A DNA stretch of 64,000 nucleotides from positions 186,001 through 250,000 of IMG/VR virus record IMGVR_UViG_3300032675_000001; one strand, given 5' to 3'. A program made the position numbers and the translations under genes. Each line of letters begins with the position of its first letter. Position 1 is the stretch's first letter. The notes under the pieces were generated by a model. That model saw only the letters and a list, made by a program, of their open reading frames with translations, was not told the origin of the DNA and searched no databases. This document shows, piece after piece, positions 42,389 to 57,147 of this stretch.

Positions 42389-42882
42389 ACTGGTTAACTA
42401 TGGTAGGCGGAACCATACCCAAATACGCACAGGAGATTGCTACTGATTTGGAAGAAGCAATGTCTTCTGATAGTGGGCTTACTGAGATTGATTCTCATGC
42501 GTGTGCATTGGCAGCAGCAGTAGCAACCGGAAACGGTGGACTCGGATTTGAGATTTCAATGAATGGTCCTCTGTTCAAGACAAATGAGCGTGAAGCAGCA
42601 AAACGTGCAGCCACACTTCTTTCTTACAAAGATACATTATACATTTTTAACTCCTGCTTTGAATGGTCCGGATTGACTCCTGACATCAGCTATTCTGACA
42701 GCAGTGTAACTGAAACGCAGTATACAATGTATGAGTTTGCGGCTGCAGTGGCTCTTAAGAACAAGGTTTTCATTGCAGAGCGAATGAAGAACCTGACTAG
42801 CATGGGTGTTCCGCACTCTCAGATTATGGCAATCTCTAAGATTGCGGCGGTGGTTGCAACCTTCTCTAAGATTGTTGTTTGA
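42385..42882 (+). CDS. AhpD-like protein lacking the CxxC motif
   Basis: IPKYAQ..L, ACALAAAVA.GN, EAAK.AA, YEFAAAV, KIAAVV match the AhpD layout. Confidence 0.55.
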   Translation: MNWLTMVGGTIPKYAQEIATDLEEAMSSDSGLTEIDSHACALAAAVATGNGGLGFEISMNGPLFKTNEREAAKRAATLLSYKDTLYIFNSCFEWSGLTPDISYSDSSVTETQYTMYEFAAAVALKNKVFIAERMKNLTSMGVPHSQIMAISKIAAVVATFSKIVV

Positions 42883-43437
42883 TTACTTAATACCGATAAT
42901 CATAAATCTACGATACCCGTTGTCATCACTATACCTAATCTCTTTAGTACCAGAGAACAGATACTTTGACATCGGGTATTTTTGTGCCAAATCATCAAGT
43001 TCCTCGTTTGGATTAACGCACAACCAAACATCATCATCGCCAATCGTGACATCACTTGATTGGATGCAAACAAGTTTGCCGTACTCAAGATTCTCAAACC
43101 AATCGTTGGTAGCCATATGTTCTGGCGAACAGTTGATAATCACATCATACCAAGATACATCATATGACCCAGCATCAGCGGTTAAGTTTTGAACTTTTCC
43201 ATCTATCGTCCAAGCGTCTACTATTTTATCAGCGATAGGCTTCACATCAGGGTCTAAATCAATGCCCAAAAAGGCTTGACATTGATCTGGGTTACGTGTT
43301 AGAAGCATAAATGCAACGAGGTTGTACCAACTTCCAAGCACTGCTACCTTAGCATTGTCGGGAAGAAACGGTTCAAGTTCTTTGCACAACCAGAGTTTAC
43401 TCTGGATTTGTCCATGAGAGAAAGCATCAAAGTTCAT
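42883..43437 (-). CDS. Class I SAM-methyltransferase-like phage protein
   Basis: FSHGQIQSKLWL, VLGSWY, GIDLD, VIINCSPEH, RFMIIG. Confidence 0.7.
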   Translation of the reverse strand: MNFDAFSHGQIQSKLWLCKELEPFLPDNAKVAVLGSWYNLVAFMLLTRNPDQCQAFLGIDLDPDVKPIADKIVDAWTIDGKVQNLTADAGSYDVSWYDVIINCSPEHMATNDWFENLEYGKLVCIQSSDVTIGDDDVWLCVNPNEELDDLAQKYPMSKYLFSGTKEIRYSDDNGYRRFMIIGIK

Positions 43438-43461
43438 GTGAATATTTAGATGATTTTTTTC

Positions 43462-43567
43462 TTGACAACAGTTTTTGAATGATATATAAGAGTGAATATG
43501 AAGCGATTTTGAGGAAAAGTTGAAAAACAGCCCCTTAAATGGCGTTTTTTTAAACACGGAATAAATA
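43462..43567 (+). promoter_or_regulatory. Tandem sigma70-like and late promoters heading the tRNA region
   Basis: TTGACA at 43462 with a TATATA/TATAA -10 region; TAAATA at 43562. Confidence 0.6.
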
Positions 43568-43575
43568 AACTTACT

Positions 43576-43722
43576 ATGAATAACACTTGTAACATATGTC
43601 TGCAACAGCATAAACAACTCTGGGCACTCGCCACAGAAGGGTTAACTATGCCTGTAGCATATCCTACAAGCATCCGCGTTAGCTTTAATTCATTGAATGG
43701 TGACGGGGGTACACAGGTTTGA
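43576..43722 (+). CDS. Putative attenuator leader peptide (48 aa, all 20 amino acids)
   Basis: MNNTCNICLQQHKQLWALATEGLTMPVAYPTSIRVSFNSLNGDGGTQV*; the stop lies in the antiterminator arm. Confidence 0.65.
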   Translation: MNNTCNICLQQHKQLWALATEGLTMPVAYPTSIRVSFNSLNGDGGTQV

Positions 43723-43758
43723 CAAAGAAGTAGAAACTTCAAACATCAAATCTAAGGT

Positions 43759-43787
43759 ACCCCGGAAAGAAGTTTCCGGGGTTTTTT
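43759..43787 (+). terminator. Rho-independent terminator (attenuator), mutually exclusive with antiterminator 43706-43763
   Basis: ACCCCGGAAA-GAAG-TTTCCGGGGT-TTTTT. Confidence 0.85.
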
Positions 43788-44019
43788 GTTAGTCAAGGCC
43801 AAAAACTTTGACAGTTGGGATGAAAGACCTGACAAAAGTGCAAGTCGGAACGAGGCTGCAAAGCACTATAAAAAAAGAACGGGCGTCACTGGGATGAAAT
43901 CTGTGGAGGTAACACAGAGAGTAAAAAAGGTGGGGAGCGGGTCAGTCCGAATTGCCGGACAACATATCTCGCTCCATCAAGAAACAAAAGGCTATTTCAT
44001 ATTAGATAGGAGTACGAAT

Positions 44020-44214
44020 ATGTACAAGAAAACTGCAAAAGCGACACAACGAAAAATGATGAAGACTGCAGAATATGCACCAAGTCTCGCTACTTTATAT
44101 GATAAACATGACAAATCACAGTGGTCCGCTAAAACCATTAACCGAGCGATTTCTTCTACAAAGAAAAGAAGGAAAAACTTTGGAAATTATATGTTTGGTA
44201 TGAAGTTCCGTTAA
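44020..44214 (+). CDS. Small basic hypothetical protein
   Basis: AGGAG RBS before ATG 44020. Confidence 0.55.
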   Translation: MYKKTAKATQRKMMKTAEYAPSLATLYDKHDKSQWSAKTINRAISSTKKRRKNFGNYMFGMKFR

Positions 44215-44334
44215 ACATCTATTACTTGAGAACATTGAGATTTAAACACACGCCCTCTTACCATGAATAAGAGACTAGCACATCAGAAATGTTTTCAAGT
44301 AACAGATGTATTATAAATATCACGCAGGATTCAT

Positions 44335-44408
44335 TGCCCCTTCGTCTAAAGGTAGGACAACAGATTTTGATTCTGTTTACGTTGGTTCGAGTCCAGCAGG
44401 GGCATCCA
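44335..44408 (+). tRNA. trnQ: tRNA-Gln(TTG)
   Basis: ACAGA-TTTTGAT-TCTGT; CCA end. Confidence 0.9.
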
Positions 44409-44425
44409 AACTCTTATAAAATAAT

Positions 44426-44500
44426 GCTGCTTTAGCTCAGTGGTAGAGCAACGCATTAGTAATGCGTAGGTCGTCAGTTCGAATCCGACAAGCAGCACCA
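44426..44500 (+). tRNA. trnT: tRNA-Thr(AGT)
   Basis: ACGCA-TTAGTAA-TGCGT. Confidence 0.9.
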
Positions 44501-44507
44501 GAAAAAT

Positions 44508-44584
44508 GGTCCCTTAGTTCAGTGGAATAGAGCGCCTGTCTTCGAAACAGGATGTCGGGAGTTCGAATCTCTCAGGGACTACCA
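44508..44584 (+). tRNA. trnR: tRNA-Arg(TCG)
   Basis: CCTGT-CTTCGAA-ACAGG. Confidence 0.9.
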
Positions 44585-44798
44585 GATTACCTTGTCCTGA
44601 CTGTGAAGAAGGAAACCCGTAACCCTTGATATCCGCAGTGTCCGCCAAGGATGAGTCGGAAGGGAAAAGTTGGAACAAAGCATTCGGGTCCAACAAGGTA
44701 TATAGTTTCGCCGGATTACTAAACAGCGGTTCCTAGGTCTGCCGTGGTGTTTACCGGTAGAGGTTCCCGATACCTCTATAAAAACAGGGAGAATTCAT

Positions 44799-44875
44799 GC
44801 AGCCATAGCTCAACTGGATAGAGCATCGGTCTACGAAACCGAAGGTTATAGGTTCAAAGCCTATTGGTTGCACCA
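44799..44875 (+). tRNA. trnR: tRNA-Arg(ACG)
   Basis: TCGGT-CTACGAA-ACCGA. Confidence 0.9.
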
Positions 44876-44882
44876 TTTTCAT

Positions 44883-44957
44883 TGACTAATAGTATAATGG
44901 TAATGCACTTCGCTGTTAACGAAGGTTATGTAGGTTCGAGTCCTACTTAGTCAGCCA
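44883..44957 (+). tRNA. trnN: tRNA-Asn(GTT)
   Basis: CTTCG-CTGTTAA-CGAAG. Confidence 0.88.
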
Positions 44958-45001
44958 TTTTAACACTTGACATTGTTTCACAATCTGATAGAGTAACACA
45001 C

Positions 45002-45424
45002 ATGAGCTATCATCTTTTTCTTGACGATGAACGTGTCCCCAGTCAGGTGACTTGGGTTGCGATTCCGGATGACGTTTATCACGTTGTGCGCAGCTACGAT
45101 GATTTTGTAGCTATGATTACTCAATGTGGTGTTCCATCATTCGTGACGTTTGACCATGACCTTGCTGATGTTCACTATCAGCATATGCTCAGAGATTGTC
45201 AGCAGAACAGTACTGGACAGTTGTTGTTCGCTGTTGCTGATCAAGTGTCTGATTACGACTATGGTCCAGAGAAGACCGGATACGATTGTGCTAAGTGGCT
45301 TGTTGATTATTGTGCAGACAATGGTGTCAAGTTTCCAGAATACACGGTTCATTCTATGAACCCTATCGGTGGCAAGCGTATCAAAGATTACGTTGAGAAT
45401 GCTAAAAAGCATCTTGACATTTAA
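45002..45424 (+). CDS. Cyclic-phosphate-processing receiver-like domain protein
   Basis: LFLDDER, FDHDL, TGYDCAKWL, HSMNP.G. Confidence 0.7.
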   Translation: MSYHLFLDDERVPSQVTWVAIPDDVYHVVRSYDDFVAMITQCGVPSFVTFDHDLADVHYQHMLRDCQQNSTGQLLFAVADQVSDYDYGPEKTGYDCAKWLVDYCADNGVKFPEYTVHSMNPIGGKRIKDYVENAKKHLDI

Positions 45425-45427
45425 TAT

Positions 45428-45503
45428 GGTGTTTGTAGCTCAGTGGTAGAGCGGCGGTTTGTGGTACCGCATGTCGCGGGTTCGATCCCCGTCTTACACC
45501 CCA
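45428..45503 (+). tRNA. trnH: tRNA-His(GTG) with G-1:C73
   Basis: GCGGT-TTGTGGT-ACCGC; two T-T mismatches in the acceptor stem. Confidence 0.85.
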
Positions 45504-45532
45504 GTTTACGTGCGTGAATGATAAATAGAGTT

Positions 45533-45754
45533 ATGGTAGACTTAACTTTCTTTAATCCGTATGGAAGAATGTTTGGGATTTCCCTTATCATTCTTGGCTT
45601 CTTTATCCTAGTAGCAGGTGCGCTGGGTGGCTTGGGTTTGTGGGTATACTATCTTGCAACTCATGGTCAGATTCCTCTTGCAATCCTAGTTACTGGATCA
45701 AGTTGCATTATCCTTGGATGGATCATCAAACTTATTTTTCGTTCACGTACTTAA
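45533..45754 (+). CDS. Small membrane protein
   Basis: Two hydrophobic helices; TAAATA upstream. Confidence 0.55.
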   Translation: MVDLTFFNPYGRMFGISLIILGFFILVAGALGGLGLWVYYLATHGQIPLAILVTGSSCIILGWIIKLIFRSRT

Positions 45755-45755
45755 C

Positions 45756-45830
45756 GCATCCTTAGCTCAGTGGTAGAGCATCTGCTCGACACGCAGAAGG
45801 TCGTTGGTTCGAAACCATCAGGATGCACCA
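45756..45830 (+). tRNA. trnV: tRNA-Val(GAC)
   Basis: TCTGC-TCGACAC-GCAGA (C33). Confidence 0.88.
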
Positions 45831-45836
45831 GTTTAT

Positions 45837-46145
45837 GGCGGCGAGTGACACCACTATTTGGTGCACCGTAATAGTGACGAATGAACGTTACCACTGCCCC
45901 ATTTTGAAATCTATGTTTTCGTCGCAATGTGACATAGATATTATTATGCCGGGTACGGGTCATCGCGTATGATGCGACGAACATACGGCTCCTCCCGGCT
46001 CCAGTTTTATGCGCCCATCGTGCTGGTTTTGACTTCCAAAATCAGAAACGGCAGAGAAAAATAAGTGGGCGCGCCAATCTTATGCCCTTGGCTTGTATGA
46101 CTTTGTGGAGATGATTACAGCAAGACGAAAATTACAAGGGCACCA
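45837..46145 (+). ncRNA. Four short acceptor-stem/CCA tRNA-like RNAs lacking D and T arms (45837-45901, 45948-46003, 46011-46076, 46084-46145)
   Basis: Each has a 6-7 bp terminal stem, an internal hairpin and a CCA end. Confidence 0.6.
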
Positions 46146-46162
46146 AACTTAAGGAGAATGAC

Positions 46163-46342
46163 ATGAAGCGTGACATTTATTTCGCCAAGCCTAGCCTGAT
46201 CGAGCGTTGCTGTCCCGGTCATGATACTTTTCCTACTGAAACCTATAATAGCCGCCGCAGCAAGAAGGCTCGTAGCCGCGATAAGAAGCTTGAACATCGC
46301 ATGGCTCGTCATCTGCTGAATCGTGCTATTGATACTGAATAA
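46163..46342 (+). CDS. Small basic hypothetical protein (59 aa)
   Basis: AAGGAG RBS; MKRDIYFAKPSLIERCCPGHD... Confidence 0.55.
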   Translation: MKRDIYFAKPSLIERCCPGHDTFPTETYNSRRSKKARSRDKKLEHRMARHLLNRAIDTE

Positions 46343-46344
46343 AT

Positions 46345-46434
46345 GGAGTCGTGACAGAGTGGCCGAATGTGACACCCTGGAAAGGTGTTGTACTCGCAAG
46401 GGTACCGTGGGTTCGAATCCCACCGACTCCGCCA
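46345..46434 (+). tRNA. trnS: tRNA-Ser(GGA)
   Basis: ACACC-CTGGAAA-GGTGT; long variable arm. Confidence 0.92.
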
Positions 46435-46440
46435 AAATTG

Positions 46441-46594
46441 TGCAGTTTAGAAAAACGTTATCGGTGGTGGAAGCGGCATACACATCTGTCTAGGGAAATA
46501 GCGTCACAATAGCCCCGACAACGGACTTCGCGTAGTAAGTGACTAGCTAATGCGATTGCGGGTTCGAGTCCCGCCCACCTAAACTGCATTACCA
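46441..46594 (+). ncRNA. Expanded tRNA-like RNA
   Basis: TGCAGTTTAG/CTAAACTGCA closing stem, D-like segment and perfect T arm GCGGG-TTCGAGT-CCCGC. Confidence 0.55.
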
Positions 46595-46598
46595 ATAA

Positions 46599-46677
46599 CG
46601 AGCATTAGGAAAGTCTGGTTTAATCCGCCTGGTTTGGGACCAGGAGATCGTAGGTTCGAATCCTACATGCTCGACCA
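46599..46677 (+). tRNA. trnP: tRNA-Pro(TGG)
   Basis: CCTGG-TTTGGGA-CCAGG. Confidence 0.9.
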
Positions 46678-46757
46678 GTTAGAAGTCATTATCGTTAAGC
46701 TCGGATGTACAGTAAACGATAATGGTTTCGCCTTCTAAAATGTGATATATATAAGAA

Positions 46758-48356
46758 ATGAAAGAACATGGTTTAATATTTGGCGGTATGATCAATATGG
46801 ATGAATCCATCCATCCTAATGATTTGTTTGGCATCAGCTACAGTTCTGTTCGCCGTCATGCCGGGTCACATAGAATTGCGTCTTTCTTGCGCAATCGCGG
46901 AATGGATATTGAAGTCATAGATTATGCACCATCTTGGAAGTTTGAAGAATTCAAAGAACTAATAAATTCTAGAGTTCATTCTAAGACTAGATTTGTCGGT
47001 CTTGGTTCAATTTTTAATATGAACACTGAAACGTTGTACAGATGTTTTCATTGGCTAAAGCAAACATATCCGGACATCTTGATTATTACTGGGGCAACTG
47101 AGTTCCATAATGTTCATTTCATTCCTGCTGATTATATGGTTGTTGGCTACGGAGAACTCGCCATTTTGGAAATCCTCAAAGGAACAGCAAAATGGAACGA
47201 AGAAGTCATTGACAAGAACGGCAATACTCGTAAAACCGTTCATGCATTACGCGATTATCCAGCGTATCCGATGAAAAATTTGTCAATAGATTATGAACAG
47301 CGAGATTTCTTGCAGCCATATGAAGCAGTAACCATGGAAACTAGCCGTGGATGTAGATTCAAATGTGCTTTTTGTACATATTCGGTTCTTGGAGTCAAAG
47401 AAGATCACACTAGGGATGCACAAGACTTTAAAGACAATCTGATTCGCAACTATGATAATTTTGGCATATATCGCTATTCAATTGCTGATGAAACTTTCAA
47501 TGATTACACTGACAAAATCATCAAGTATGCAGATGTAGTTGACGGTCTATCATTTAGTCCAAATTTTGGTGGATATATTAGAGCGGACCTCCTTCATGCT
47601 CGTCCAAACGATATTGAACATCTAGCTAGAATGAGATTTAATGGTCAATTCTATGGAGTTGAGTCATTTCATAGACCTAGTGCAAAGATGATTGGTAAAG
47701 GTATGGAACCAGAAAAAATCCAACAGGCGATTCTGGATACCAAAGAGTATTTCATGAAACATCTTGGATACTATAAAGGGACTATCAGTCTTATTGTTGG
47801 CTTACCCAATGAGACTGAGGATACCTTACTGGAAACTAAAAAGTGGTGTGATGATAATTGGCAAACACAGCATGTTGCGTATACACCATTATTCATTACT
47901 ACTGACCACAACAATGTTAAACAGAGTACACTCACTGCAACATATAAAAAGCAGGGGTATACACTGGTAACACCTGATGATATAAAGCTAGATGAATCTC
48001 ATCCCGATTTAAAACTTATATTTTCTAGTAATTCTGTACCAACTGAAATAAAGAATTATATAAGAGTTTTCTTGAGAAATCTTGGTCCAACAGTTCTTTT
48101 TCATCATTGGAAAAGTAACACCGGAATGACTGAGCGAGACGCATTGCTTTGGATTTCAAAAAATGTATGGGGCACAGAAGATTACTTAAGATTCGGTGTA
48201 GACCACTGGCGCATGGATGAATGGTATATTGCAGGTAAGACTGATCAAGAAATGCTAGGATCATACCATGATTTAGGTGGAATACGTCCACCATCGCAAG
48301 TCAGAGTTGACTTCATTGAAGATTATAAGACTAAGAAACTCAACTACGTTTCTTAA
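46758..48356 (+). CDS. Radical SAM protein (B12-binding/class B-like architecture)
   Basis: ETSRGCRFKCAFC, ADETFN, YIRADL, GVESF, IVGLP.ET. Confidence 0.88.
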   Translation: MKEHGLIFGGMINMDESIHPNDLFGISYSSVRRHAGSHRIASFLRNRGMDIEVIDYAPSWKFEEFKELINSRVHSKTRFVGLGSIFNMNTETLYRCFHWLKQTYPDILIITGATEFHNVHFIPADYMVVGYGELAILEILKGTAKWNEEVIDKNGNTRKTVHALRDYPAYPMKNLSIDYEQRDFLQPYEAVTMETSRGCRFKCAFCTYSVLGVKEDHTRDAQDFKDNLIRNYDNFGIYRYSIADETFNDYTDKIIKYADVVDGLSFSPNFGGYIRADLLHARPNDIEHLARMRFNGQFYGVESFHRPSAKMIGKGMEPEKIQQAILDTKEYFMKHLGYYKGTISLIVGLPNETEDTLLETKKWCDDNWQTQHVAYTPLFITTDHNNVKQSTLTATYKKQGYTLVTPDDIKLDESHPDLKLIFSSNSVPTEIKNYIRVFLRNLGPTVLFHHWKSNTGMTERDALLWISKNVWGTEDYLRFGVDHWRMDEWYIAGKTDQEMLGSYHDLGGIRPPSQVRVDFIEDYKTKKLNYVS

Positions 48357-48364
48357 AATACTAT

Positions 48365-48450
48365 GGAGTGTGCTGAGGTTGGCTCCTCGCACTGTCTCGA
48401 AAACAGTAGGTACTGCAAGGTACATAGTTCGATGCTATCACACTCCGCCA
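48365..48450 (+). tRNA. trnS: tRNA-Ser(CGA), atypical 8/4 fold
   Basis: GGAGTGTG/CACACTCC 8-bp acceptor; ATAG/CTAT 4-bp T stem; ACTGT-CTCGAAA-ACAGT. Confidence 0.8.
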
Positions 48451-48533
48451 GAGGTTTAGAGCATTGTGGGTATGGCTGTAATTTTTCCGCCGATGTGGAT
48501 CGTGACTGGACAAACCCTCCGATAAAGATTTTT

Positions 48534-48606
48534 GGGGCCGCTAGTGGGTCTAGCGGTTGGGCTGGCAGTCCGACTTGCGAGAGTTCAATTCTCTCCGGCT
48601 CCACCA
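48534..48606 (+). tRNA. trnA: tRNA-Ala(GGC), atypical D arm
   Basis: GGGGCCG/CGGCTCC (G3:U70) plus ACCA; loop CTGGCAG. Confidence 0.75.
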
Positions 48607-48615
48607 AATATTTTT

Positions 48616-48703
48616 AAAAATAGTTCTTGACATTATCTGAACTACACGCTATTGTGAGTTCATAGAGAGCGACGAAAGAAACTCTCTGTTCTTTGACATT
48701 GTT
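48616..48703 (+). promoter_or_regulatory. rrn-like promoter with boxB hairpin and boxA
   Basis: AAAATAGTTCTTGACA...GCTATTGT; AGAGAG/CTCTCT hairpin; GTTCTTTGACATTGTT. Confidence 0.7.
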
Positions 48704-48936
48704 GAATGAATAAAATCTATCGGGTGGTCAAGCTAAGGGCGTGAGCGTGGCACTGGCAAGACCTGAAATAGAGTAGCGGACCCTCCCTAGCACCGTGACT
48801 CTTCCCTACGATAGACTGTTTAGATGAACCCTGTTGACGTAATTGTGCAGTGGTAGCTCGTCCGTTAATTCGGTGGTCCTAGCGCAGGTTCGAATCCTGT
48901 ACGAAGGGTACGACTTTATATAAAGAAAGGAAGATC

Positions 48937-49176
48937 ATGTTCTATGAAAAGTGTGCCGAGTTACTCGGTGCGACATATGAATGTGAATCTTTCCCTTATC
49001 GCTATCGTACTCGCTGGAACAATCGTTCTCCGGGCAACGGTAGGTTTGAGGGCTTTGGAATAATCAGAAAGTTTGGTGATAACTATCAAGTGGCGTTAAC
49101 TCGTCCGATATCGCATCATGCTATCTATCATTCCGAAGAAGAAGTATTCGCATTCCTGAGAAGTTTATCTCAATGA
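48937..49176 (+). CDS. Hypothetical protein
   Basis: AAGGA RBS; TRWNNR.PGNGR motif. Confidence 0.6.
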   Translation: MFYEKCAELLGATYECESFPYRYRTRWNNRSPGNGRFEGFGIIRKFGDNYQVALTRPISHHAIYHSEEEVFAFLRSLSQ

Positions 49177-49267
49177 TAGACTTATTAGATGAACACTGTT
49201 AGTCTGATAAACTCATAGAGCTAGAAGGGCGACAGCAAGAGAAACAGTGTTCTTCTAATAAGTTTAT

Positions 49268-49343
49268 GCTTCTGTAGCTCAGTTGGTAGAGCACCAGACT
49301 GAAAATCTGGGTGTCGCCGGTTCAATCCCGGCTGGAAGCACCA
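49268..49343 (+). tRNA. trnF: tRNA-Phe(GAA)
   Basis: CCAGA-CTGAAAA-TCTGG. Confidence 0.93.
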
Positions 49344-49365
49344 GAATTAAAACCAAATAGTTAAT

Positions 49366-49450
49366 GCGGGTATGGTGTAATTGGTAGCCACGGCAGACTT
49401 AGAATCTGTTGCTTTATCGCGTGGGGGTTCAAGTCCCTCTACCCGCACCA
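49366..49450 (+). tRNA. trnL: tRNA-Leu(TAG)
   Basis: GCAGA-CTTAGAA-TCTGT. Confidence 0.92.
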
Positions 49451-49656
49451 AGTTTTGCTCAAGTGTGATTAGCTTGAGAACAGAGTAGACGATTCATGTC
49501 GGGCAAGGCAACTCTTATCAAGTTGTTAGTTGTGGCACAGGATGGGGACGGTCTCTATAAAAACGTGTATCCAGCTATTCATGTTGAGTGAGAAATACTC
49601 GGAAGATCGCTACGGTGCCCGATCACTTGACTAAATACTCTCAACAGGAGAGTAAA

Positions 49657-49830
49657 ATGGACCCAGAACTGCAAGCACAGATTAAAGATTATCTAGCAAA
49701 CAATCTGTCAATGACATTTGGTATTAGTCAAGACCCATATGGTCTATGGCAAGATCAGATAACGATCAACTTATGCCTTGAAGGTGAAGTGATCAATACT
49801 ATTGTCATGTATGACTGGAGTAATAACTAA
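49657..49830 (+). CDS. Small hypothetical protein
   Basis: TAAATA and AGGAG upstream. Confidence 0.55.
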   Translation: MDPELQAQIKDYLANNLSMTFGISQDPYGLWQDQITINLCLEGEVINTIVMYDWSNN

Positions 49831-49836
49831 GTAAAT

Positions 49837-49922
49837 GCCCCGATGGTGGAATCGGTAGACGCGGGAGACTCAAAATCTCTTGCCCAAAAGGCGTGGGGGT
49901 TCAAGTCCCTCTCGGGGCACCA
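49837..49922 (+). tRNA. trnL: tRNA-Leu(CAA)
   Basis: GGAGA-CTCAAAA-TCTCT. Confidence 0.92.
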
Positions 49923-49923
49923 T

Positions 49924-50400
49924 TTAACTTTTTGGACCAGTAAATTTGATATAGCGTTTTTCGCCAGTTTCAAAGTTTACAAGCCTGTCAAGTAGGTGAC
50001 CGCCTTCTTCGTAGTCACCATTTGGGTCTTCTCTTCGAAGATACACTATAGGTGTGTAAAATCCATCTTCTGTAGGTAAAAAGTATGCTGGACCAAAATT
50101 AAATTCTTGACGTATATGGGCAGAATGAGCACTTTCTTGTCCTGTCTTAGATCGTGTCACTCCATGTCTAATAACTTTGTAAATTCCGCCTTTTGGTAAA
50201 CGAATTCTACTGCCAATCGGAAGATCATCAAACAGACCTTGCTCATTCATTGCTGATAATGCAGATTGAGAACCACTTACACCATTCTGGACTTTATTCA
50301 TAAGTTCTTTATGGAATCCACGTAGTTCTTTGTCTTTTTTTGCAGAATCAAAATCAACAACATTTGATTCTATTATGTTAATAAGGTCTCTCATATTCAT
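49924..50400 (-). CDS. Hypothetical protein, possible internal virion protein
   Basis: N-terminal MRDLINIIES. Confidence 0.65.
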   Translation of the reverse strand: MNMRDLINIIESNVVDFDSAKKDKELRGFHKELMNKVQNGVSGSQSALSAMNEQGLFDDLPIGSRIRLPKGGIYKVIRHGVTRSKTGQESAHSAHIRQEFNFGPAYFLPTEDGFYTPIVYLRREDPNGDYEEGGHLLDRLVNFETGEKRYIKFTGPKS

Positions 50401-50420
50401 TTGATGATTCCGTTTATAGT

Positions 50421-50999
50421 TTATAGGCCAGCTTCCGCTTTAAGAGCGTTGAGTTTCTGGTCATAACTCTTAGCCCAAGAATAAACGGCCTTCTTTAGGC
50501 GGGCAAAAATGCTTCCAACGGCTTCGTTTATGGGCTTAACTGTCAAGGCTGGTGCTTTCTGTGTTTTTGTGACCATTTCTTCTTGACTCTTGATGCCCTC
50601 TAACACTTTGATAAGTTCAGGTGTAAGATGCTTTTCAAGTTCTTCAAGAATGTTCTTATACTTTGGAGCCTCGGTAACTTTAGGGTCTTTGGTAAGATTG
50701 AAAATGAAACTGACTGTTTCAATGACACGAGTACGAGCAGCATCTGCAGCATCAAAAAGATCAGCAACGTCTTCTCTAGTGTGTTGCTTGATTTCATCTT
50801 TTAGTTGCTTCATTTCTTCTGTGAGTTCTTCCATTCGCTGTAGCTTCTGAGCAAGCTTAGTGTATGTTTGGCTCTTATAGCTGCGAAGTCTTGCGATGAC
50901 TTTGGTCCCCTTGGGATCATCTTCGTATTCAATATCCGGGTTGTCTGTAATTCTGCCTTCGCAGATCATCATGAGTTTTTTAAAGCTGTCAATATCCAT
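50421..50999 (-). CDS. Hypothetical coiled-coil protein, possible internal virion protein
   Basis: Minus-strand TAAATA near 51028; FKKLMMICEG N-terminus. Confidence 0.65.
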   Translation of the reverse strand: MDIDSFKKLMMICEGRITDNPDIEYEDDPKGTKVIARLRSYKSQTYTKLAQKLQRMEELTEEMKQLKDEIKQHTREDVADLFDAADAARTRVIETVSFIFNLTKDPKVTEAPKYKNILEELEKHLTPELIKVLEGIKSQEEMVTKTQKAPALTVKPINEAVGSIFARLKKAVYSWAKSYDQKLNALKAEAGL

Positions 51000-51217
51000 G
51001 GGAAGTTACCTTGTTAATATGGTATTTATCTCATATAGTTTTGTAGTGGGTGTTAGTAAGGTGAAATCTCAGCGTAGGCATACGTTGAAAAAGGATGGCG
51101 TATCCTGAAAGTAATCTGCAATAACGTACCCAAAGGACGTAAGTCCACAGGCGGAGGCGCTGATAAATTCCGCATAATGCTTCCTATGTTGTGGAGGAAG
51201 GCCCGCTACAATTTTTT

Positions 51218-51293
51218 GCTCTATAAGCATTGCTGGCGATGCGCCGGATTCGTAACCCGGAGATAACAGGTTCGATTCCTGTATAGAGCACCA
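51218..51293 (+). tRNA. trnT: tRNA-Thr(CGT)
   Basis: CCGGA-TTCGTAA-CCCGG. Confidence 0.87.
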
Positions 51294-51294
51294 T

Positions 51295-51387
51295 GCACCC
51301 GTAGCTCAATGGTAGAGCGGTGAGCTTATACCTCATGATCGGCAGATTACCGAACGGTTGGCGGTTCGAGTCCGTCCGGGTGCACCA
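51295..51387 (+). tRNA. trnI: tRNA with TAT (Ile) anticodon and long variable arm
   Basis: GTGAG-CTTATAC-CTCAT; variable arm TCGG/CCGA. Confidence 0.8.
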
Positions 51388-51394
51388 ATTTAAT

Positions 51395-51480
51395 GCCCAG
51401 GTGGTGGAATGGTAGACACGCAACGTTGAGGTCGTTGTGGACGAAAGTCCGTGAAAGTTCGAGTCTTTTCTTGGGCACCA
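51395..51480 (+). tRNA. trnL: tRNA-Leu(GAG)
   Basis: CAACG-TTGAGGT-CGTTG. Confidence 0.92.
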
Positions 51481-51497
51481 GATTTAGGAATATAGTT

Positions 51498-52328
51498 ATG
51501 GATACTATTGTGGCAATTTTAACATCTGGAAAGTTGGATAAGCTGGAGAGATGTATTCAGAGTGTATTGGGACAAACAAAAAACATCGTAGTGATCATTA
51601 ATACTTTAGATGAAGAATATATCCCACATGCACAACGCCTTTCATCATTGATGGGAATACCATCAATTGTTACTCCATCTAATGGAAAACCGGGAAAAGG
51701 AAAAAACTCGCTGATTGAGTACTTTCTGACTACTGAGTTCACTCATGTTATTCCAGTAGATGGCGATGATTATTTGATGCCAAACGCAGTATCCATACTG
51801 GAACATGTTGCAAACAGAGAATCAGCAGATGTGATAGGTCTTATTGATGCCCTTGCTCTTTTAGATGGTTCACATCTTATGGTAGAGGATTGGCTACACA
51901 CTGATGTTTATCTAAACAGAACAATCAGCAGCATAAACGAAAAAGATTTCAAAAAGTTCAATCTTCACATTGAAAAGATACGCCGGGTATCTACTGAGCA
52001 TGGAAACTTTTTTAACCGATTAGTGCTTCTTTCTAAAGCTGCCGCCTCTCTCATTGACTATGAAGAAGAAATGGGTGGCGCAGAAGATGTCAAGCAAAGC
52101 CTCTTGCTCAAACTTGCACATAATAGTCAAATCATCCGGTATGTGTTGTTGAGCAGTAAAAACGTATATGTTCATGATGTCAGCGATACTGGCGTGTTCT
52201 TTAATGTTTTGTGCAAATGTGATCCAGATAAAGAGAAGTATTTTTTCTGGAAAGACCTTCCAAGAGAACAAATAAATACACTCAAGTCTTTTGAACTGGA
52301 GTGTGTGTATGAGCAAGATGGAATTTAA
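51498..52328 (+). CDS. Glycosyltransferase family 2-like protein
   Basis: LERCIQSVL, NG.PGKGKN, VDGDD, ED. Confidence 0.75.
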   Translation: MDTIVAILTSGKLDKLERCIQSVLGQTKNIVVIINTLDEEYIPHAQRLSSLMGIPSIVTPSNGKPGKGKNSLIEYFLTTEFTHVIPVDGDDYLMPNAVSILEHVANRESADVIGLIDALALLDGSHLMVEDWLHTDVYLNRTISSINEKDFKKFNLHIEKIRRVSTEHGNFFNRLVLLSKAAASLIDYEEEMGGAEDVKQSLLLKLAHNSQIIRYVLLSSKNVYVHDVSDTGVFFNVLCKCDPDKEKYFFWKDLPREQINTLKSFELECVYEQDGI

Positions 52329-52986
52329 TATTGATTGGTTGGATGGATGGTCTAACTTTAAAAAAATGTTCAAAGACCCGTCCTCTACCAAGCACATACT
52401 TGCTTTGGCAAAAGCGATGAATGGTCCCGCTCTGAAAAGATCGTATAGTAGGCTTCTTGAAACCGAAGAGGGAACAAACATTGCAACGTCTTTTCCGGAA
52501 ATAGCCGATCTTTATGAACATCTGGTTGATTGCCAAAGTGGAACAGTTGGAAATGCTATATTGAGCAATCAAAACTCAATTGAAGTATTGATTCGTCTCA
52601 GTCGGCTAGGAACACGCAACAGAAGTTGGATCAACAGAAAACATCCATACATATGGATGGCCAGAAGATTCAGAGACACTCATGACATTTGGCATGTTTT
52701 AACCGGGTACGATATGGACTTTTTTGGAGAAATCTGCTTAGCGGCATTTAGTTATGGGCAGACCAAAGCATATCAGTGGGGACTAATATGTGTTATGGGA
52801 GTCTGGAAACTTAAGACATCTCCAAAAAAACTCTTGGCAGTCTATGAAGCTTATCGTCGCGGTAGAAAATGCTCATGGTTGCTGGCAGAAAACTACGAGC
52901 ATGTCCTCAAAGAAAACCTAGATGATTGTAGAAAAAGATTGAACATATTCACTGCAAAACGTTATGATAAAATTACAAAAAATTGA
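52309..52986 (+). CDS. coq4: Coq4-family protein
   Basis: RFRDTHDIWHVLTGY...GEICLAAFSYGQ; C-terminal L.E.L...R..L.I. Confidence 0.8.
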   Translation: MSKMEFNIDWLDGWSNFKKMFKDPSSTKHILALAKAMNGPALKRSYSRLLETEEGTNIATSFPEIADLYEHLVDCQSGTVGNAILSNQNSIEVLIRLSRLGTRNRSWINRKHPYIWMARRFRDTHDIWHVLTGYDMDFFGEICLAAFSYGQTKAYQWGLICVMGVWKLKTSPKKLLAVYEAYRRGRKCSWLLAENYEHVLKENLDDCRKRLNIFTAKRYDKITKN

Positions 52987-53596
52987 CAGTTCATATCCGA
53001 TAGAAAAGATTATCGCGTTCTGTGACGAAGCTATTGCAGACACCAGACCCGGCGCACAGAACATGAGTCCTATTGATTGGGAAAATAACCCATCTTCTTT
53101 TCTCTATCTTCTCTATTGTGAAAAACGATATGATGGAGAGGGAAATGGATATGTCATATGCGAAAAAGACGATAAGATTATTTGTGGTAGTGGCTTTTCG
53201 GCATCAGATATTGATGAAAAAATGACTCATCTAAGTTCACGAAGCTACACCATTCCCGGAATACGAGTTCCAAGGATACATGGAGCAATTCACGATTTTG
53301 CCGTGGATACCAGCATAGAGGCAGGTAGATATGGCGCGTTTTCATCATTAAATGAATACAACAAGAGATTTGTAGAAGGTTATTTGTATCTCAATGATCC
53401 AAAAAATCATAAACAATATCATGTTGTTGATGGAAAACATTATGCCAAACCGGGCGTAAGAATCCATCCTATGGAAGCCGCTGGTCCTTTGAGATTGAAA
53501 GGCACTAAACAGTGGATAACTTATATGATTTGGAATGAGTCACATCGTGACGTATTTCTGAGCACATTAACAAAGATAAAATGGGAAGAAACTTAA
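52964..53596 (+). CDS. Hypothetical protein
   Basis: 210-aa ORF. Confidence 0.6.
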   Translation: MIKLQKIDSSYPIEKIIAFCDEAIADTRPGAQNMSPIDWENNPSSFLYLLYCEKRYDGEGNGYVICEKDDKIICGSGFSASDIDEKMTHLSSRSYTIPGIRVPRIHGAIHDFAVDTSIEAGRYGAFSSLNEYNKRFVEGYLYLNDPKNHKQYHVVDGKHYAKPGVRIHPMEAAGPLRLKGTKQWITYMIWNESHRDVFLSTLTKIKWEET

Positions 53597-53706
53597 AAGT
53601 GCAAAGCTGATTATATATTTATAGATTTTGCTTGCACTAAGAGAGATTATAGACTACAAAGGAATCACGGTCTAAATATGTAGAAAGAAAGCAAACAGGA
53701 GATTTT

Positions 53707-54270
53707 ATGGCAATTCTAGCACTAGATATTTCAGGTGTCCCTCGGACGTGGGTCACCCACGACGAAGCAATTTCGTATTACGCGAAGGACCTCGTAGCCT
53801 GGACTCTCGGTGATGTAGTTGCCAAGTATCGTGGTGGTACTCGCCGTGACGGTTCGCAAAGTTACCTTGAAGCAGCAAGCATCATTGCTGTAAAGGGTCA
53901 TGGCTTTGACTTCAACAAGCACAACAAGGTTGTGTTGACGAACAAGACTTTGTTCGCACGTGACCGTAATGTGTGCGCTTACTGCGGTTCGCACTTCCAC
54001 AGTGTTAACTTGAGCCGTGATCACATCTACCCTAAGTTCTTGGGTGGTATTGATGAATGGACCAACGTAGTAACTGCATGTAAGGTCTGTAACCAAAAGA
54101 AGGGTTGCAAGACGTTGAAGGAAGCCCGTATGGAACTGCTTTACGTCCCTTATGAGCCAAACCACTTTGAGAATCTGATTCTCCAGAATCGCAACATCCT
54201 TGCGGATCAGATGGAATATCTGTTGTCGGGTGTTCCGAAGCACAGTCGAATTATTGATATGGCAGCATAG
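53707..54270 (+). CDS. HNH endonuclease (McrA/HNH_5-like)
   Basis: LFARD..CAYCG, DHI.P..GG..W.NVVTACK.CN..K. Confidence 0.88.
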   Translation: MAILALDISGVPRTWVTHDEAISYYAKDLVAWTLGDVVAKYRGGTRRDGSQSYLEAASIIAVKGHGFDFNKHNKVVLTNKTLFARDRNVCAYCGSHFHSVNLSRDHIYPKFLGGIDEWTNVVTACKVCNQKKGCKTLKEARMELLYVPYEPNHFENLILQNRNILADQMEYLLSGVPKHSRIIDMAA

Positions 54271-54320
54271 AAAAATAATTCGACTCTGCTTTCAACCATT
54301 AAATATTATTAAGTTATCAT

Positions 54321-54396
54321 TCCTCAGTAGCACAGTGGTAGTTGCATCGGTCTGTTAAACCGAATGTCGTTGGTTCGAGTCCAACCTGAGGAGCCA
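54321..54396 (+). tRNA. trnN: tRNA-Asn(GTT), second copy
   Basis: TCGGT-CTGTTAA-ACCGA. Confidence 0.92.
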
Positions 54397-54456
54397 ATTT
54401 AAAACCTCTAACCTGCAAAACTTTGATAAATATATTTGCAGGTTAGAGGTTATATT

Positions 54457-55029
54457 ATGAGTTACATGTCGGATAATGTAAAACGTTGGCGAGACAGAAC
54501 CAAATCTAGAATGGTTGAATCAATGGGTGGTAAATGTCAGTGTTGCGGCTATGATACACATACCGCTGCTTTAGCATTCCACCATATTGATCCCAGTCAG
54601 AAGGACATTAAATTTGGGGACGCAAGAGCGAACCCTAGTTCTTGGTCTAAGATCGTAGCTGAACTTAAAAAATGTATTTTGGTATGTCACAATTGTCATA
54701 GTGAAATACATGCTGGAGTTAGAGCAATTCCGGACTCATTTGCTACTTTTAATGAAGACTTTGCTGACTTCAAAAAAGTATCTGATTATGATTCGTGTCC
54801 GGTATGCAGTAAACAAAAACCAGTAGGACAAAAGTTTTGTAGTCATACTTGCGCTCAGCGCAACAGCCGAAAGGTAGATTGGGATAGTATTGACTTGATT
54901 GCGTTGCTTGACAAGCATGGAATTAGAGAACTAGAAAATATGCTAGGAGTTTCTAATGCGGCTATATACAAGCGGAGAGACAAAATATTACGCTCTAAAA
55001 GCATTGCTGGCGATGCGCCGGATTTGTAA
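54457..55029 (+). mobile_element. HNH homing endonuclease whose 3' end overlaps tRNA-Thr(TGT)
   Basis: CQCCG, FHH.DP, C.LVCHNCH.EIH. Confidence 0.8.
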
Positions 55030-55067
55030 CCCGGAGATAGTGAGTTCGATTCTCGCTTAGAGCACCA
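54992..55067 (+). tRNA. trnT: tRNA-Thr(TGT)
   Basis: CCGGA-TTTGTAA-CCCGG. Confidence 0.87.
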
Positions 55068-55123
55068 TTTTTATCCCAAGATTGCACTAAATAAAGTGTG
55101 AGAATCAGTAAAGGAGAACTGAA

Positions 55124-55486
55124 ATGGGAATGTTAGATAAGATTGCACCTTGGGTGCAAAAGGCGGAAGAAGAAGTTATTCATCTTGAGCAGGTTATTGT
55201 TCAGGACGCAAAGTATCTTTATGAAAAGGCACACCAAGAAGCACTAGCTGCCAATCAGGAAGTTGTTCGTCTTAAGGGGCTTTTGCAGGATGCACTTGTC
55301 AAGTCACGCGATTTGCATCAGGTAGCAATCAATGCTGCTCAGGAAGCAGGAAAAGTGGCAGAAGCAGAGTTCAACAAACTCAAGCAAGCTGTAGCCGCAC
55401 ATACGGCAGATTTCAACACTCAGCATAGTCAGATTGTTGGTTCTAATCCACCGGCACCAAGCAATACTCCTGAACAAAGTTCTTGA
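55124..55486 (+). CDS. Hypothetical coiled-coil protein
   Basis: TAAATA and AAGGAG upstream. Confidence 0.65.
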   Translation: MGMLDKIAPWVQKAEEEVIHLEQVIVQDAKYLYEKAHQEALAANQEVVRLKGLLQDALVKSRDLHQVAINAAQEAGKVAEAEFNKLKQAVAAHTADFNTQHSQIVGSNPPAPSNTPEQSS

Positions 55487-55530
55487 CATTAGCATCAAAC
55501 CTGCTATACTGAGGGCATGTTAAAGAGAAT

Positions 55531-55608
55531 GGTGCCATAGCTCAGTTGGAGTAGAGCACGAGCCTTCTAAGCTTGGGGTCGTAGGTTCGAGTCCTACTGG
55601 CATCGCCA
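55531..55608 (+). tRNA. trnR: tRNA-Arg(TCT)
   Basis: CGAGC-CTTCTAA-GCTTG. Confidence 0.92.
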
Positions 55609-55652
55609 CTCTTTTTGTTTGATAGAGATTTTACGATATAAATAGTTTTAAT

Positions 55653-55727
55653 GGGGCCTTAGTGCTAACGGGAACACGGTAGCTTTGCAAGCTTCAATTA
55701 AGGGTTCGATTCCCTTAGGCTCCACCA
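55653..55727 (+). tRNA. trnA: tRNA-Ala(TGC)
   Basis: G3:U70; loop TTTGCAA. Confidence 0.88.
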
Positions 55728-55828
55728 AGTTTAAGAAATCTCCCTTGAGGGGATCAGGTTGTGGATGTCTTAGGTGGCATCGGATATGCGGCAGGACACG
55801 AGAAGCCAGTATATCATGAAGTTTATAA

Positions 55829-55905
<77 letters not shown>

Positions 55906-55913
55906 GTTTACAT

Positions 55914-55988
55914 GCCGGGTTAGCTCAGTGGTAGAGCACCGCCTTTACACGGCGATTGCCGGGGGTTCAAATCCCTCACCCGGTACCA
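55914..55988 (+). tRNA. trnV: tRNA-Val(TAC)
   Basis: CGCC-TTTACAC-GGCG. Confidence 0.9.
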
Positions 55989-56066
55989 TATTCATGAAAA
56001 ACTACAGGTTATATATCTGTAGTTTTTCTTTTTGTGATAAATATATAACTATTCTTTACGGAAGAA

Positions 56067-56480
56067 TTGGAAGAAAGGTTTTATGAGTTGGCACAAGTTA
56101 ATAAACATATCCTCGTTACAGGATACCTAGCAGACGCCCCTGAGGCAGAATACGTTACTTTTCTAGCAGACTGGTTCAAACGCTTAGTTGAAGCAGTTGA
56201 CATGAAGGTCCTTATTGAACCTATTTGTGTTTGGTGCGATGATGAAGGTAACGAAGGCGTAACGGGGATGGTAGGAATAACTACTAGCCATTCATCAATT
56301 CATTTTTGGTCTGGTGAGCCATCGTATTACAAGTTTGATCTGTATTCGTGCAAGGATTTCTCACTTGACGCAGTAGCAGGTATGCTCAAGGAACTTGGCA
56401 CACATAAATTCACCTACACCGTAGTTGATCGCACAGATGATGAACATCCTGTGATTGATAGTGGTGTTGTCACTTTCTAA
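56067..56480 (+). CDS. speD: S-adenosylmethionine decarboxylase proenzyme-like protein (start uncertain, possibly TTG 56088)
   Basis: GVTG...ITTSHSSIHFW...DLYSCKDF. Confidence 0.75.
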   Translation: MEERFYELAQVNKHILVTGYLADAPEAEYVTFLADWFKRLVEAVDMKVLIEPICVWCDDEGNEGVTGMVGITTSHSSIHFWSGEPSYYKFDLYSCKDFSLDAVAGMLKELGTHKFTYTVVDRTDDEHPVIDSGVVTF

Positions 56481-56618
56481 ATAACGAGGTTGGAGTTCCC
56501 GTGACTCCGTTGGTACCTGAGGACAAAGAGGAAAATAACACTAGTTTTCTCTCCTGCTGGGCCAGAATAAAATTGCGGGCGGATACGGAGAGAGTTGTGT
56601 TAACTCTCTCCCCGACAT

Positions 56619-56693
56619 GCAGGTGTGATGTCAACGGTAGCATGACGGTCTCCAAAACCGTTCGTCTGGGTTCGAATCCTAGCACCTGTGCCA
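56619..56693 (+). tRNA. trnW: tRNA-Trp(CCA)
   Basis: ACGGT-CTCCAAA-ACCGT. Confidence 0.92.
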
Positions 56694-56702
56694 AACTTTC
56701 TG

Positions 56703-56787: not shown

Positions 56788-56801
56788 AGAAAGTTTAATG
56801 T

Positions 56802-56885: not shown

Positions 56886-56897
56886 AACATATTTTAG

Positions 56898-57056: not shown

Positions 57057-57147
57057 TTAATACATTCAATACACAGAAAAAAACGGCTAAAATCCACCGG
57101 ACTGATAAACCGGAATCCTTCTGTGTATTGGATATTGATAGTATAAT

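Follow-up and report, generated by a model that had tools for sequence, protein, structure and literature searches.

A leader ORF that contains all 20 amino acids precedes the tRNA genes of a giant phage and may act as a transcription attenuator

In the amino-acid operons of enterobacteria (trp, his, leu, thr, pheA, ilvGMEDA and ilvBN), a short ORF lies between the promoter and the regulated genes, an intrinsic terminator lies just downstream, and an antiterminator pairing shares bases with the 5' arm of the terminator. The regulating amino acid is sensed through clustered codons, and the antiterminator of trp is weaker than its terminator. Multivalent attenuators report on more than one amino acid, such as Thr and Ile in thr or Ile, Leu and Val in ilvGMEDA, but these sense two or three related amino acids through clustered codons. 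T-box riboswitches also use terminator/antiterminator control in response to the charging state of tRNA, but they bind one specific uncharged tRNA directly and need no translation. In drug- or metabolite-sensing leader peptides (ermC, cat, tnaC, secM and the mgtA/mgtCBR leaders), the ribosome position on a short upstream ORF remodels the downstream RNA, and some of these depend on the nascent peptide sequence. They respond to one ligand or to one amino acid such as Pro or Trp, and none is known to be built from all 20 amino acids or to precede tRNA genes. Shortage of any amino acid is sensed through the translating ribosome by RelA in the stringent response and by eukaryotic Gcn2/GCN4 uORF control, which are protein-based, trans-acting pathways. 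Phage tRNA arrays are common, but how their expression is controlled is hardly known.

In this study, we analyzed a window of 64,000 nucleotides, positions 186,001 to 250,000 of the IMG/VR virus record IMGVR_UViG_3300032675_000001. A preliminary description of this window had proposed that a 48-codon ORF using all 20 amino acids forms, with its last codons and stop, an antiterminator in front of a strong terminator and a tRNA array, and that it senses depletion of any tRNA. The observation itself was confirmed. The parts of the locus from the promoter to the tRNA array lie on the plus strand. The ORF at 43576-43722 encodes 48 amino acids followed by TGA and contains all 20 amino acids. It uses 31 distinct codons, including CTG, CTC, TTA, TTG, ATA, ATC, CAA and CAG, as had been stated. 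Two promoters had been described, but only one was supported, a sigma-70-type promoter at 43462-43490 (TTGACA at 43462-67, a 17-nt spacer and TATAAG at 43485-90). The promoter scan missed it only because the -10 ends in G, and no acceptable second promoter was found. A -35/-10 pair at this place was present in 101 of 101 distinct upstream regions of relatives, 60-90 nt before the ATG. ARAGORN found 34 tRNA genes downstream (44335-62265, interspersed with ORFs) and one at 30380, instead of the 36 described. Of the internal promoters named, those at 44967, 48627 and 55483 were recovered as promoter-like, whereas that at 56713 was not.

The pairings of the ORF end were then examined. The outer stem pairs GGGGTAC (43706-43712, codons 44-46 of the ORF) with GTACCCC (43757-43763), and its 3' strand overlaps the 5' arm of the terminator by 5 nt. 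The middle stem pairs AGGTTTGA (43715-43722), which contains the TGA stop at 43720-22, with TCAAATCT (43746-43753), and the inner stem pairs GAAGT (43727-31) with ACTTC (43736-40). The middle and inner stems form a hairpin, H1 (43715-43753; -8.0 kcal/mol, z -4.0), which caps the antiterminator. The intrinsic terminator (43759-43788) consists of ACCCCGGAAA / TTTCCGGGGT with the loop GAAG, a 10-bp stem with 6 GC at 43759-43782, and a T-run. Folding of 43690-43770, without the 3' arm of the terminator, gave exactly the composite hairpin (-26.5 kcal/mol, z -4.35). When the 3' arm was added (43690-43792), the terminator was in the minimum-energy fold, and with a little more flank the composite hairpin won again. 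The two folds are therefore near-isoenergetic alternatives.

In the window alone, the composition would not be convincing. All 20 amino acids occurred in 1.2-2.0% of 45-48-aa windows of the long ORFs of this phage, and in 3 of 100 small ORFs. The number of distinct codons was ordinary (background 27.4 +/- 4.6, with 26% at or above 31), and so was codon adaptiveness. Other all-20 small ORFs in the window lie inside other genes and are unrelated, and there is no second leader.

The family comparison is what makes the composition non-random. We collected relatives, including by a two-block DNA pattern in the metagenome collection, and found the same module in well over 100 uncultured freshwater phage contigs. 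A 16-mer scan of IMG/VR gave about 57 hits, of which only about 10 were real. GenBank phages gave no DNA match to 43000-44400 and no tblastn match to two family peptides, and no cultured carrier is known. Three exact matches of the 19-nt RNA pattern in reference bacterial and archaeal genomes were chance hits inside bacterial coding sequence, with no tRNAs, and gave no clue to the host. The peptide had no hit in Pfam or PHROGs, and its database relatives are all unnamed or 'hypothetical protein'. Full-text literature searches found nothing describing such a leader.

Of 135 distinct peptides (43-50 aa), 119 contained all 20 amino acids and the other 16 contained 19, against a background of 1.5% for 46-mers. 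Column shuffles gave 30.8 +/- 4.3 peptides with all 20. Simulation on the family's own tree from an all-20 root, with site-specific rates and frequencies, gave 29-47 tips and never reached 119 in 300 runs. Among representatives below 60% identity, 10 of 14 had all 20, against 2.3 +/- 1.2 expected, and below 50% identity 4 of 5 did, against 1.2 (P = 0.006). A control set of small ORFs from the same loci showed no such excess (z 1.8, against z 8.5 for the leader). All of these statistics rest on related sequences from similar lake metagenomes. Cys, His, Trp, Tyr, Phe, Asp and Glu averaged 0.96-1.4 copies per peptide, and when one of these was missing from its usual column, it was present elsewhere in 257 of 265 cases. 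For example, three peptides (P0063, P0064 and P0065) carry Cys in three different places, and the relative L082 (related loci are numbered with L) lost and regained both Trp and Cys. Some clades lack Cys although the phage encodes tRNA-Cys. The idea that Cys-less leaders belong to phages without tRNA-Cys was rejected, because L094 has tRNA-Cys. These results demonstrated that the all-20 composition is selected in a family that has diverged to about 35-50% identity.

The ORF appears to be coding, as its frame and stop position are kept through 3-nt indels, and synonymous changes are present. Compared with the neighboring gene in the same genome pairs, the leader was less conserved in amino acids (~50% versus ~70%) but more conserved in codon choice at identical residues (~65% versus ~50%). 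The high codon diversity in the preliminary description was not supported as a distinguishing feature, as across the family it was only modestly raised (35.4 versus 32.5 distinct codons). Both Ser, Leu, Gly and Thr codon groups, and ATA-Ile, were represented more often than random synonymous choice predicts (20.1 versus 18.5 of 24 groups). The peptide is not free to vary, since it has invariant motifs such as Y-P-T-S-I-R-G and L-W. No Shine-Dalgarno lies at normal spacing. The ATG is conserved, but the only purine-rich motif upstream is the GGA of a conserved 5'-UTR motif at 43555-43568 (CACGGAATAAATAA here, CCAGGACTAAATAA in relatives), whose columns are invariant or nearly invariant in a 93-sequence alignment. 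This GGA lies about 15 nt before the ATG, too far for a normal Shine-Dalgarno, while neighboring genes use GGAG at 8 nt, and translation of the leader is therefore unproven.

We next investigated whether the pairing of the ORF end with the terminator is kept in relatives. In 82 of 93 sequences, the ORF segment that pairs best with the 5' arm of the terminator was the last ~20 nt of the ORF, with a mean duplex energy of -14.5 kcal/mol there against -2 to -8 elsewhere. The complementarity holds even where both sequences differ, as in the window, L027 and L082 types, and cognate pairs were preferred between divergent types. However, the pairing excess over shuffled ORF ends was modest per sequence (0.65 versus 0.45). 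The sequence of H1 differs in relatives (TAAGTAGAC / GTTTATTTA and others), but 2-3 stop-codon bases were paired in 77 of 93, although H1 is weak in the main clade, at -1 to -3 kcal/mol. The stop-in-hairpin geometry is thus kept, and the outcome that had been named beforehand as a refutation, homologues lacking the geometry, did not occur. The stem of the terminator is conserved with compensatory pairs (CG to AU in 40 sequences and UA to CG in 21), and a T-run of 4 or more follows it in 83 of 93 relatives. RNAalifold on the full 93-sequence alignment recovered the terminator but not H1 or the antiterminator, because indels scramble that part of the alignment, and per-sequence folding was used instead. 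Capturing the 5' arm yields about -12.5 kcal/mol, against -17.7 for the terminator, and the E. coli trp leader has a similar balance. The stop codon lies 18-31 nt before the terminator arm, so a terminating ribosome would not cover the terminator. A search for a trp-like region 1 found no ORF or UTR segment that pairs with the ORF-end strand better than with shuffled controls. The design has three strands rather than the four of trp, and neither an anti-antiterminator nor a pause hairpin was found.

The linkage to tRNA genes was universal. All 53 loci with enough flank had same-strand tRNA genes within 3 kb downstream, and the median distance from the stop codon to the first tRNA was 487 nt. 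However, 29 of 53 loci, including the largest clade, have a further sigma-70-like promoter between the terminator and the tRNAs. In those loci the leader cannot be the sole gate, and tRNA expression cannot depend on readthrough alone. The preliminary description had already suggested, from internal promoters, that only the first block of tRNAs may be controlled.

These results suggest that the module is a ribosome-mediated transcription attenuator whose leader peptide is built to need every kind of charged tRNA, a reading that we consider somewhat more likely than not. In this view, host RNA polymerase starts at the sigma-70 promoter and a ribosome translates the 43-48-codon ORF. The last four to six codons are complementary to the 5' arm of the terminator, and the small hairpin holding the stop codon would nucleate this pairing. 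If the ribosome is absent, or is held up earlier in the ORF because some aminoacyl-tRNA is lacking, the ORF end would capture the 5' arm as it emerges, and transcription would run on into a conserved structured RNA and the tRNA genes of the phage. If the ribosome reaches the end of the ORF, it would cover the antiterminator strand and melt the stop-codon hairpin, so that the terminator forms and the transcript ends. The phage would make more of its own tRNAs when decoding of any amino acid is slow, and fewer when translation is healthy, giving homeostatic feedback. The ORF, its selected composition, the alternative pairings and their conservation, the promoter, the terminator and the linkage to tRNA arrays were established by our analysis on sequence, thermodynamic and comparative grounds, whereas translation of the ORF, actual termination and readthrough, the control of termination by the two folds, the direction of the response and its biological purpose are inferred. 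The interpretation in the preliminary description was thus partly supported, and its link to anticodon-nuclease defence is pure speculation. Since no upstream partner exists for the antiterminator strand, untranslated transcripts should read through, and the device would be 'on' by default. Glu, typically only 6-7 codons from the end, and often Gln/Asp lie so close to the antiterminator strand that a stall there should hide it and not give readthrough under the simple model. However, no amino-acid type depends on the last 3 codons in any peptide, and only 8 of 135 peptides depend on the last 5.

The locus shares with the enterobacterial attenuators a short ORF between the promoter and the downstream genes, an intrinsic terminator just downstream, an antiterminator pairing that shares bases with the 5' arm of the terminator and is weaker than the terminator, and an antiterminator strand that a ribosome reaching the end of the ORF would mask. 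Compared with them, the locus has no run of codons for one amino acid, as each of the 20 is present and the rarer ones about once. The peptide sequence is partly conserved, no good Shine-Dalgarno is present, the genes downstream are tRNAs and a non-coding RNA instead of biosynthetic enzymes, and the module is carried by a phage. The Rfam His_leader match scored only 20.3 bits against a threshold of 49 (E = 1.7). Unlike the multivalent attenuators, the whole set of amino acids is covered with near-single copies. No T-box (RF00230) match was found at E <= 10 in 42800-44400, nor at E <= 0.5 in four related loci, and here an ORF is the conserved sensing element. Dependence on the nascent peptide, as in some of the drug- or metabolite-sensing leaders, could explain the invariant Y-P-T-S-I-R-G motif. 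In contrast to RelA and Gcn2/GCN4, this would be a cis-acting RNA/ORF device in a virus. It is about as likely as not that a widespread family of freshwater giant phages carries such a cis-acting 'pan-aminoacyl-tRNA' sensor, in which shortage or destruction of any tRNA species during infection would raise transcription of the tRNA array and of the associated structured RNA. Leader-peptide attenuation has so far been a way to sense one amino acid or a few, and such an ORF would be a compact general sensor of decoding capacity, which would bear directly on how phages cope with host tRNA loss and could be reused as a reporter of translation stress. Even if the regulatory model fails, a 43-48-residue peptide family in which 88% of members contain every amino acid needs explaining.

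Other explanations are less likely. The 45-aa peptide may be the functional product of an ordinary stand-alone small gene, for example a modulator of a host or phage factor connected with tRNA or translation, with the complementarity between ORF end and terminator incidental or serving only mRNA stability. The invariant motifs, which are unlike classical leader peptides, the strong promoter and canonical terminator of the unit, the new promoter after the terminator in 29 of 53 loci and a predicted N-terminal helix spanning residues 3-22 would fit this reading, although the AlphaFold model was poor (pLDDT 62, pTM 0.24). We consider it unlikely, because it does not explain the retention of all 20 amino acids with single-copy residues moving between columns, the specific match of the ORF end to each terminator type, or the higher conservation of synonymous sites than in the neighboring gene while amino acids are less conserved. 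It is slightly less likely that the peptide acts in trans as a signal of translational health, its level reporting that the tRNA pool is complete and its conserved motif repressing or activating other promoters of the array, while the terminator simply ends this small transcript. This would explain the all-20 constraint, the invariant motifs and the position upstream of a separate promoter. However, it gives no role to the ORF-end/terminator complementarity or the stop-in-hairpin geometry, no DNA- or RNA-binding fold or family is recognizable, and nothing here supports a 45-aa peptide as a regulator, although this is possible. It is also doubtful that the unit is primarily a structured or dual-function RNA, in which the ~290-nt terminated transcript is active and translation only remodels or times it. 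The whole leader folded much better than shuffles (z -4.96), synonymous sites are unusually conserved, and a second conserved structured RNA lies next to it. A tentative long-range helix inside the ORF, between CTTGTA (43586-43591, Thr-Cys-Asn codons) and TACAAG (43665-43670, in the Y-P-T-S codons), was present in the minimum-energy fold of the whole leader. Both of its strands are nearly invariant, with one compensatory case (ACTTGTG with CACAAGT in L106), but this evidence is weak. An RNA-only role would not maintain a reading frame through indels, a fixed stop position and a full amino-acid set, RNAalifold found little conserved structure in the ORF body apart from the terminator, and there was no Rfam match. 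Chance, as a spurious ORF in a 5' or 3' UTR with a composition that is a 1.5-3% event in the window alone, is refuted by the conservation of the ORF, its frame, its composition and its geometry in more than 100 distinct sequences down to ~35% identity.

Between the terminator and the tRNAs lies a conserved structured RNA of unknown kind (43806-44010), which would be the first thing transcribed on readthrough. GOLLD, ROOL, tmRNA and RNase P were considered for this RNA, but none matched, as only tRNAs passed the Rfam gathering thresholds in the whole window and only noise appeared at E-value thresholds. It showed 89-98% nucleotide identity to relatives that are only ~50% identical in the leader peptide, its core was present in 44 of 53 loci, and compensatory pairs were seen. 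The phage T4 tRNA cluster likewise contains small stable RNAs (species 1 and 2 / rnaC, rnaD), structured RNAs of unknown role that are co-located and probably co-transcribed with phage tRNA genes, and the resemblance rests on this alone. In this phage, a gene for a 64-aa basic protein with a GGAG Shine-Dalgarno (44020-44214) is inserted between the RNA and the first tRNA. It had no family hit in Pfam or PHROGs, but a homologue is present in L075.

The window lies on IMGVR_UViG_3300032675_000001, a 360-kb uncultured phage contig that has no close relative among GenBank phages. We first determined the layout between a leftward gene ending at 43437 and the tRNA array. A sigma-70-type promoter (TTGACA at 43462-67, a 17-nt spacer, and TATAAG at 43485-90) is followed by a 5' UTR of about 80 nt and a 48-codon ORF (43576-43722). 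The ORF is followed by a composite hairpin, a strong intrinsic terminator (stem 43759-82 plus T-run), about 200 nt of conserved non-coding sequence, a 64-aa basic protein gene (44020-44214), and 34 tRNA genes (44335-62265). When the RNA was folded without the 3' arm of the terminator, it adopted the proposed antiterminator (-26.5 kcal/mol, z -4.35). When the 3' arm was included, the terminator and the antiterminator were close competitors. The arrangement reported in the preliminary description was present, and all of its hairpin coordinates were exact. However, its second promoter and its count of 36 tRNAs were not confirmed.

We next examined whether the ORF of the window is unusual by itself. 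All 20 amino acids occur in 1.2-2.0% of 45-48-residue windows of the proteins of this phage and in 3 of 100 small ORFs. The use of 31 distinct codons and the codon adaptiveness were ordinary. Searches of Rfam, Pfam, and PHROGs returned nothing. These results indicate that the window alone is not remarkable.

We next searched IMG/VR and lake metagenomes for relatives, using the neighboring gene, a 16-mer from the ORF, the peptide alignment, a 19-nt block of the downstream RNA, and a two-block DNA pattern. Well over 100 loci were recovered. Every locus showed the same order, namely a promoter, the UTR motif CCAGGACTAAATAA, an ORF of 43-48 codons, an A/U-rich hairpin carrying the stop codon, a GC-rich terminator, and then tRNA genes. 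Among distinct sequences, a -35/-10 pair was located 60-90 nt before the ATG in 101 of 101 upstream regions. The terminator had a T-run of 4 or more in 83 of 93 sequences, and its stem showed compensatory pairs. Same-strand tRNA genes were found within 3 kb downstream in 53 of 53 loci, with a median distance of 487 nt to the first tRNA, which is usually tRNA-Gln or tRNA-Arg.

A conserved structured RNA of about 200 nt (43806-44010, plus strand) lies between the terminator of the leader and the tRNAs. It is more conserved than the leader (89-98% identity), shows compensatory pairs, is present in 44 of 53 loci, and has no Rfam family. In the largest clade, it lies behind its own promoter and a 51-53-aa ORF. 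In the window, the 64-aa protein gene (44020-44214, plus strand), which encodes a lysine/arginine-rich product and has a good Shine-Dalgarno, is inserted between this RNA and the first tRNA. It is present in the related locus L075 but absent from most relatives.

The leader ORF is real, as its frame and stop position survive 3-nt insertions and deletions and synonymous changes occur. We then investigated its composition. Of 135 distinct peptides (43-50 aa), 119 contained all 20 amino acids and 16 contained 19, with Cys being the one usually missing. Shuffling of residues within alignment columns gave 30.8 +/- 4.3. When one representative was taken per 60%-identity cluster, 10 of 14 had all 20, against 2.3 +/- 1.2 expected, and at 50% identity 4 of 5 did, against 1.2 (P = 0.006). 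Evolution was also simulated on the family's own tree from an all-20 root, with site-specific rates and residue frequencies. This simulation gave 29-47 all-20 tips and never reached 119 in 300 runs. A control set of small ORFs from the same loci showed no excess (z 1.8, against z 8.5 for the leader). These results indicate that the composition of the leader is selected.

We also examined how the set is kept complete. Cys, His, Trp, Tyr, Phe, Asp, and Glu average 0.96-1.4 copies per peptide. When one of these residues is absent from its usual column, it is almost always present somewhere else. Three closely related peptides (P0063, P0064, and P0065) carry their single Cys at three different positions, and the related locus L082 lost Trp and Cys from the usual columns and has them elsewhere. 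In a few relatives (L082, L086, and L097), an in-frame ATG 12 codons upstream extends the ORF through the conserved UTR motif, and in the two Cys-less leaders, L086 and L097, this extension supplies a Cys codon. Compared with the flanking gene in the same genome pairs, the leader changes more in amino acids (~50% versus ~70% identity) but less at synonymous sites of conserved residues (~65% versus ~50% identical codons). Coverage of separate codon groups, including both Ser, Leu, Gly, and Thr groups and ATA-Ile, was modestly above random synonymous choice. The AlphaFold model of the peptide was poor (pLDDT 62), with one predicted N-terminal helix.

We next examined the pairing between the ORF and the terminator. 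Among all 16-nt windows of the ORF, the one that pairs best with the 5' arm of the terminator was at the 3' end of the ORF in 82 of 93 sequences, with a mean energy of -14.5 kcal/mol there, against -2 to -8 elsewhere. The window, L027, and L082 types of leader have different C-terminal codons and different terminator arms, and each pairs best with its own arm. The pairing excess over shuffles was, however, modest per sequence. Capture of the arm is worth about -12.5 kcal/mol, against -17.7 for the terminator hairpin, and the terminator was in the full-length minimum-energy fold in 64 of 93 sequences. Two or three bases of the stop codon were paired in the intervening hairpin in 77 of 93 sequences, although this hairpin is weak in the main clade. 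The terminator arm starts 18-31 nt after the stop, outside the footprint of a terminating ribosome. No amino-acid type depends on the last three codons and very few depend on the last five, and those codons are the antiterminator strand itself. A tentative, nearly invariant long-range helix was also found inside the ORF (CTTGTA at 43586-43591 with TACAAG at 43665-43670), with one compensatory variant in the related locus L106. It would lie within reach of an initiating ribosome and might limit translation to the first, transcription-coupled round.

The simplest account of these data is a three-strand attenuator. In this view, the end of the ORF would capture the terminator arm by default, giving readthrough, and a ribosome that completes the ORF would prevent this, giving termination. 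Because the ORF needs every amino acid, a stall for want of any charged tRNA would favor readthrough into the structured RNA and the tRNA genes. This is the interpretation put forward in the preliminary description, and it was partly supported, since the family data support its two pillars, the composition and the geometry. We have high confidence that the conserved all-amino-acid ORF is a real, selected feature, whereas the regulatory model is inferred and we consider it about as likely to be right as not. Several points call for caution. No Shine-Dalgarno lies at normal spacing and no anti-antiterminator was found. In addition, 29 of 53 loci carry another sigma-70-like promoter after the terminator, and peptide motifs such as Y-P-T-S-I-R-G are invariant. 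Glu usually sits too near the end to be sensed by the simple model, and Cys-less leaders occur in a phage that has tRNA-Cys. A functional small peptide, a peptide acting as a trans signal of translational health, and a dual-function RNA are not excluded as alternatives, but each of them leaves either the composition or the geometry unexplained.

Nothing comparable was found in Rfam, Pfam, or PHROGs, in GenBank phages, in reference prokaryotic genomes, or in full-text literature searches. Leader-peptide attenuation is a known kind of mechanism. The sensing of all amino acids at once, the target (tRNA genes), and the carrier (a phage) would be new.

Other genes were found in and around the tRNA array. 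A protein with a cREC_REC domain (cyclic-phosphate-processing receiver, PF20274, E = 8e-21) is encoded inside the array at 45002-45424 (plus strand), which hints at RNA or tRNA repair functions next to the tRNAs. A radical SAM/B12-binding protein is also encoded inside the array (46758-48356, plus strand), and radical SAM (and SPASM) genes lie directly upstream of the leader in the distant clade (loci L103-L105 and L108). A lone tRNA with anticodon CUA (30380-30454, plus strand) lies 14 kb upstream of the array. It is of the amber-suppressor type, is labeled 'Pyl' by ARAGORN, and scored 39.8 bits against the Rfam tRNA family. Leader ORFs in the family end almost always in TAA (88 of 93). Farther upstream, a 1165-aa ORF (7649-11146, plus strand) with Gly-rich tandem repeats, in which the unit is about 30 aa and contains CTWPGKC, forms a GC-rich island (GC 0.61, strong AT skew) in a genome of otherwise 42% GC.
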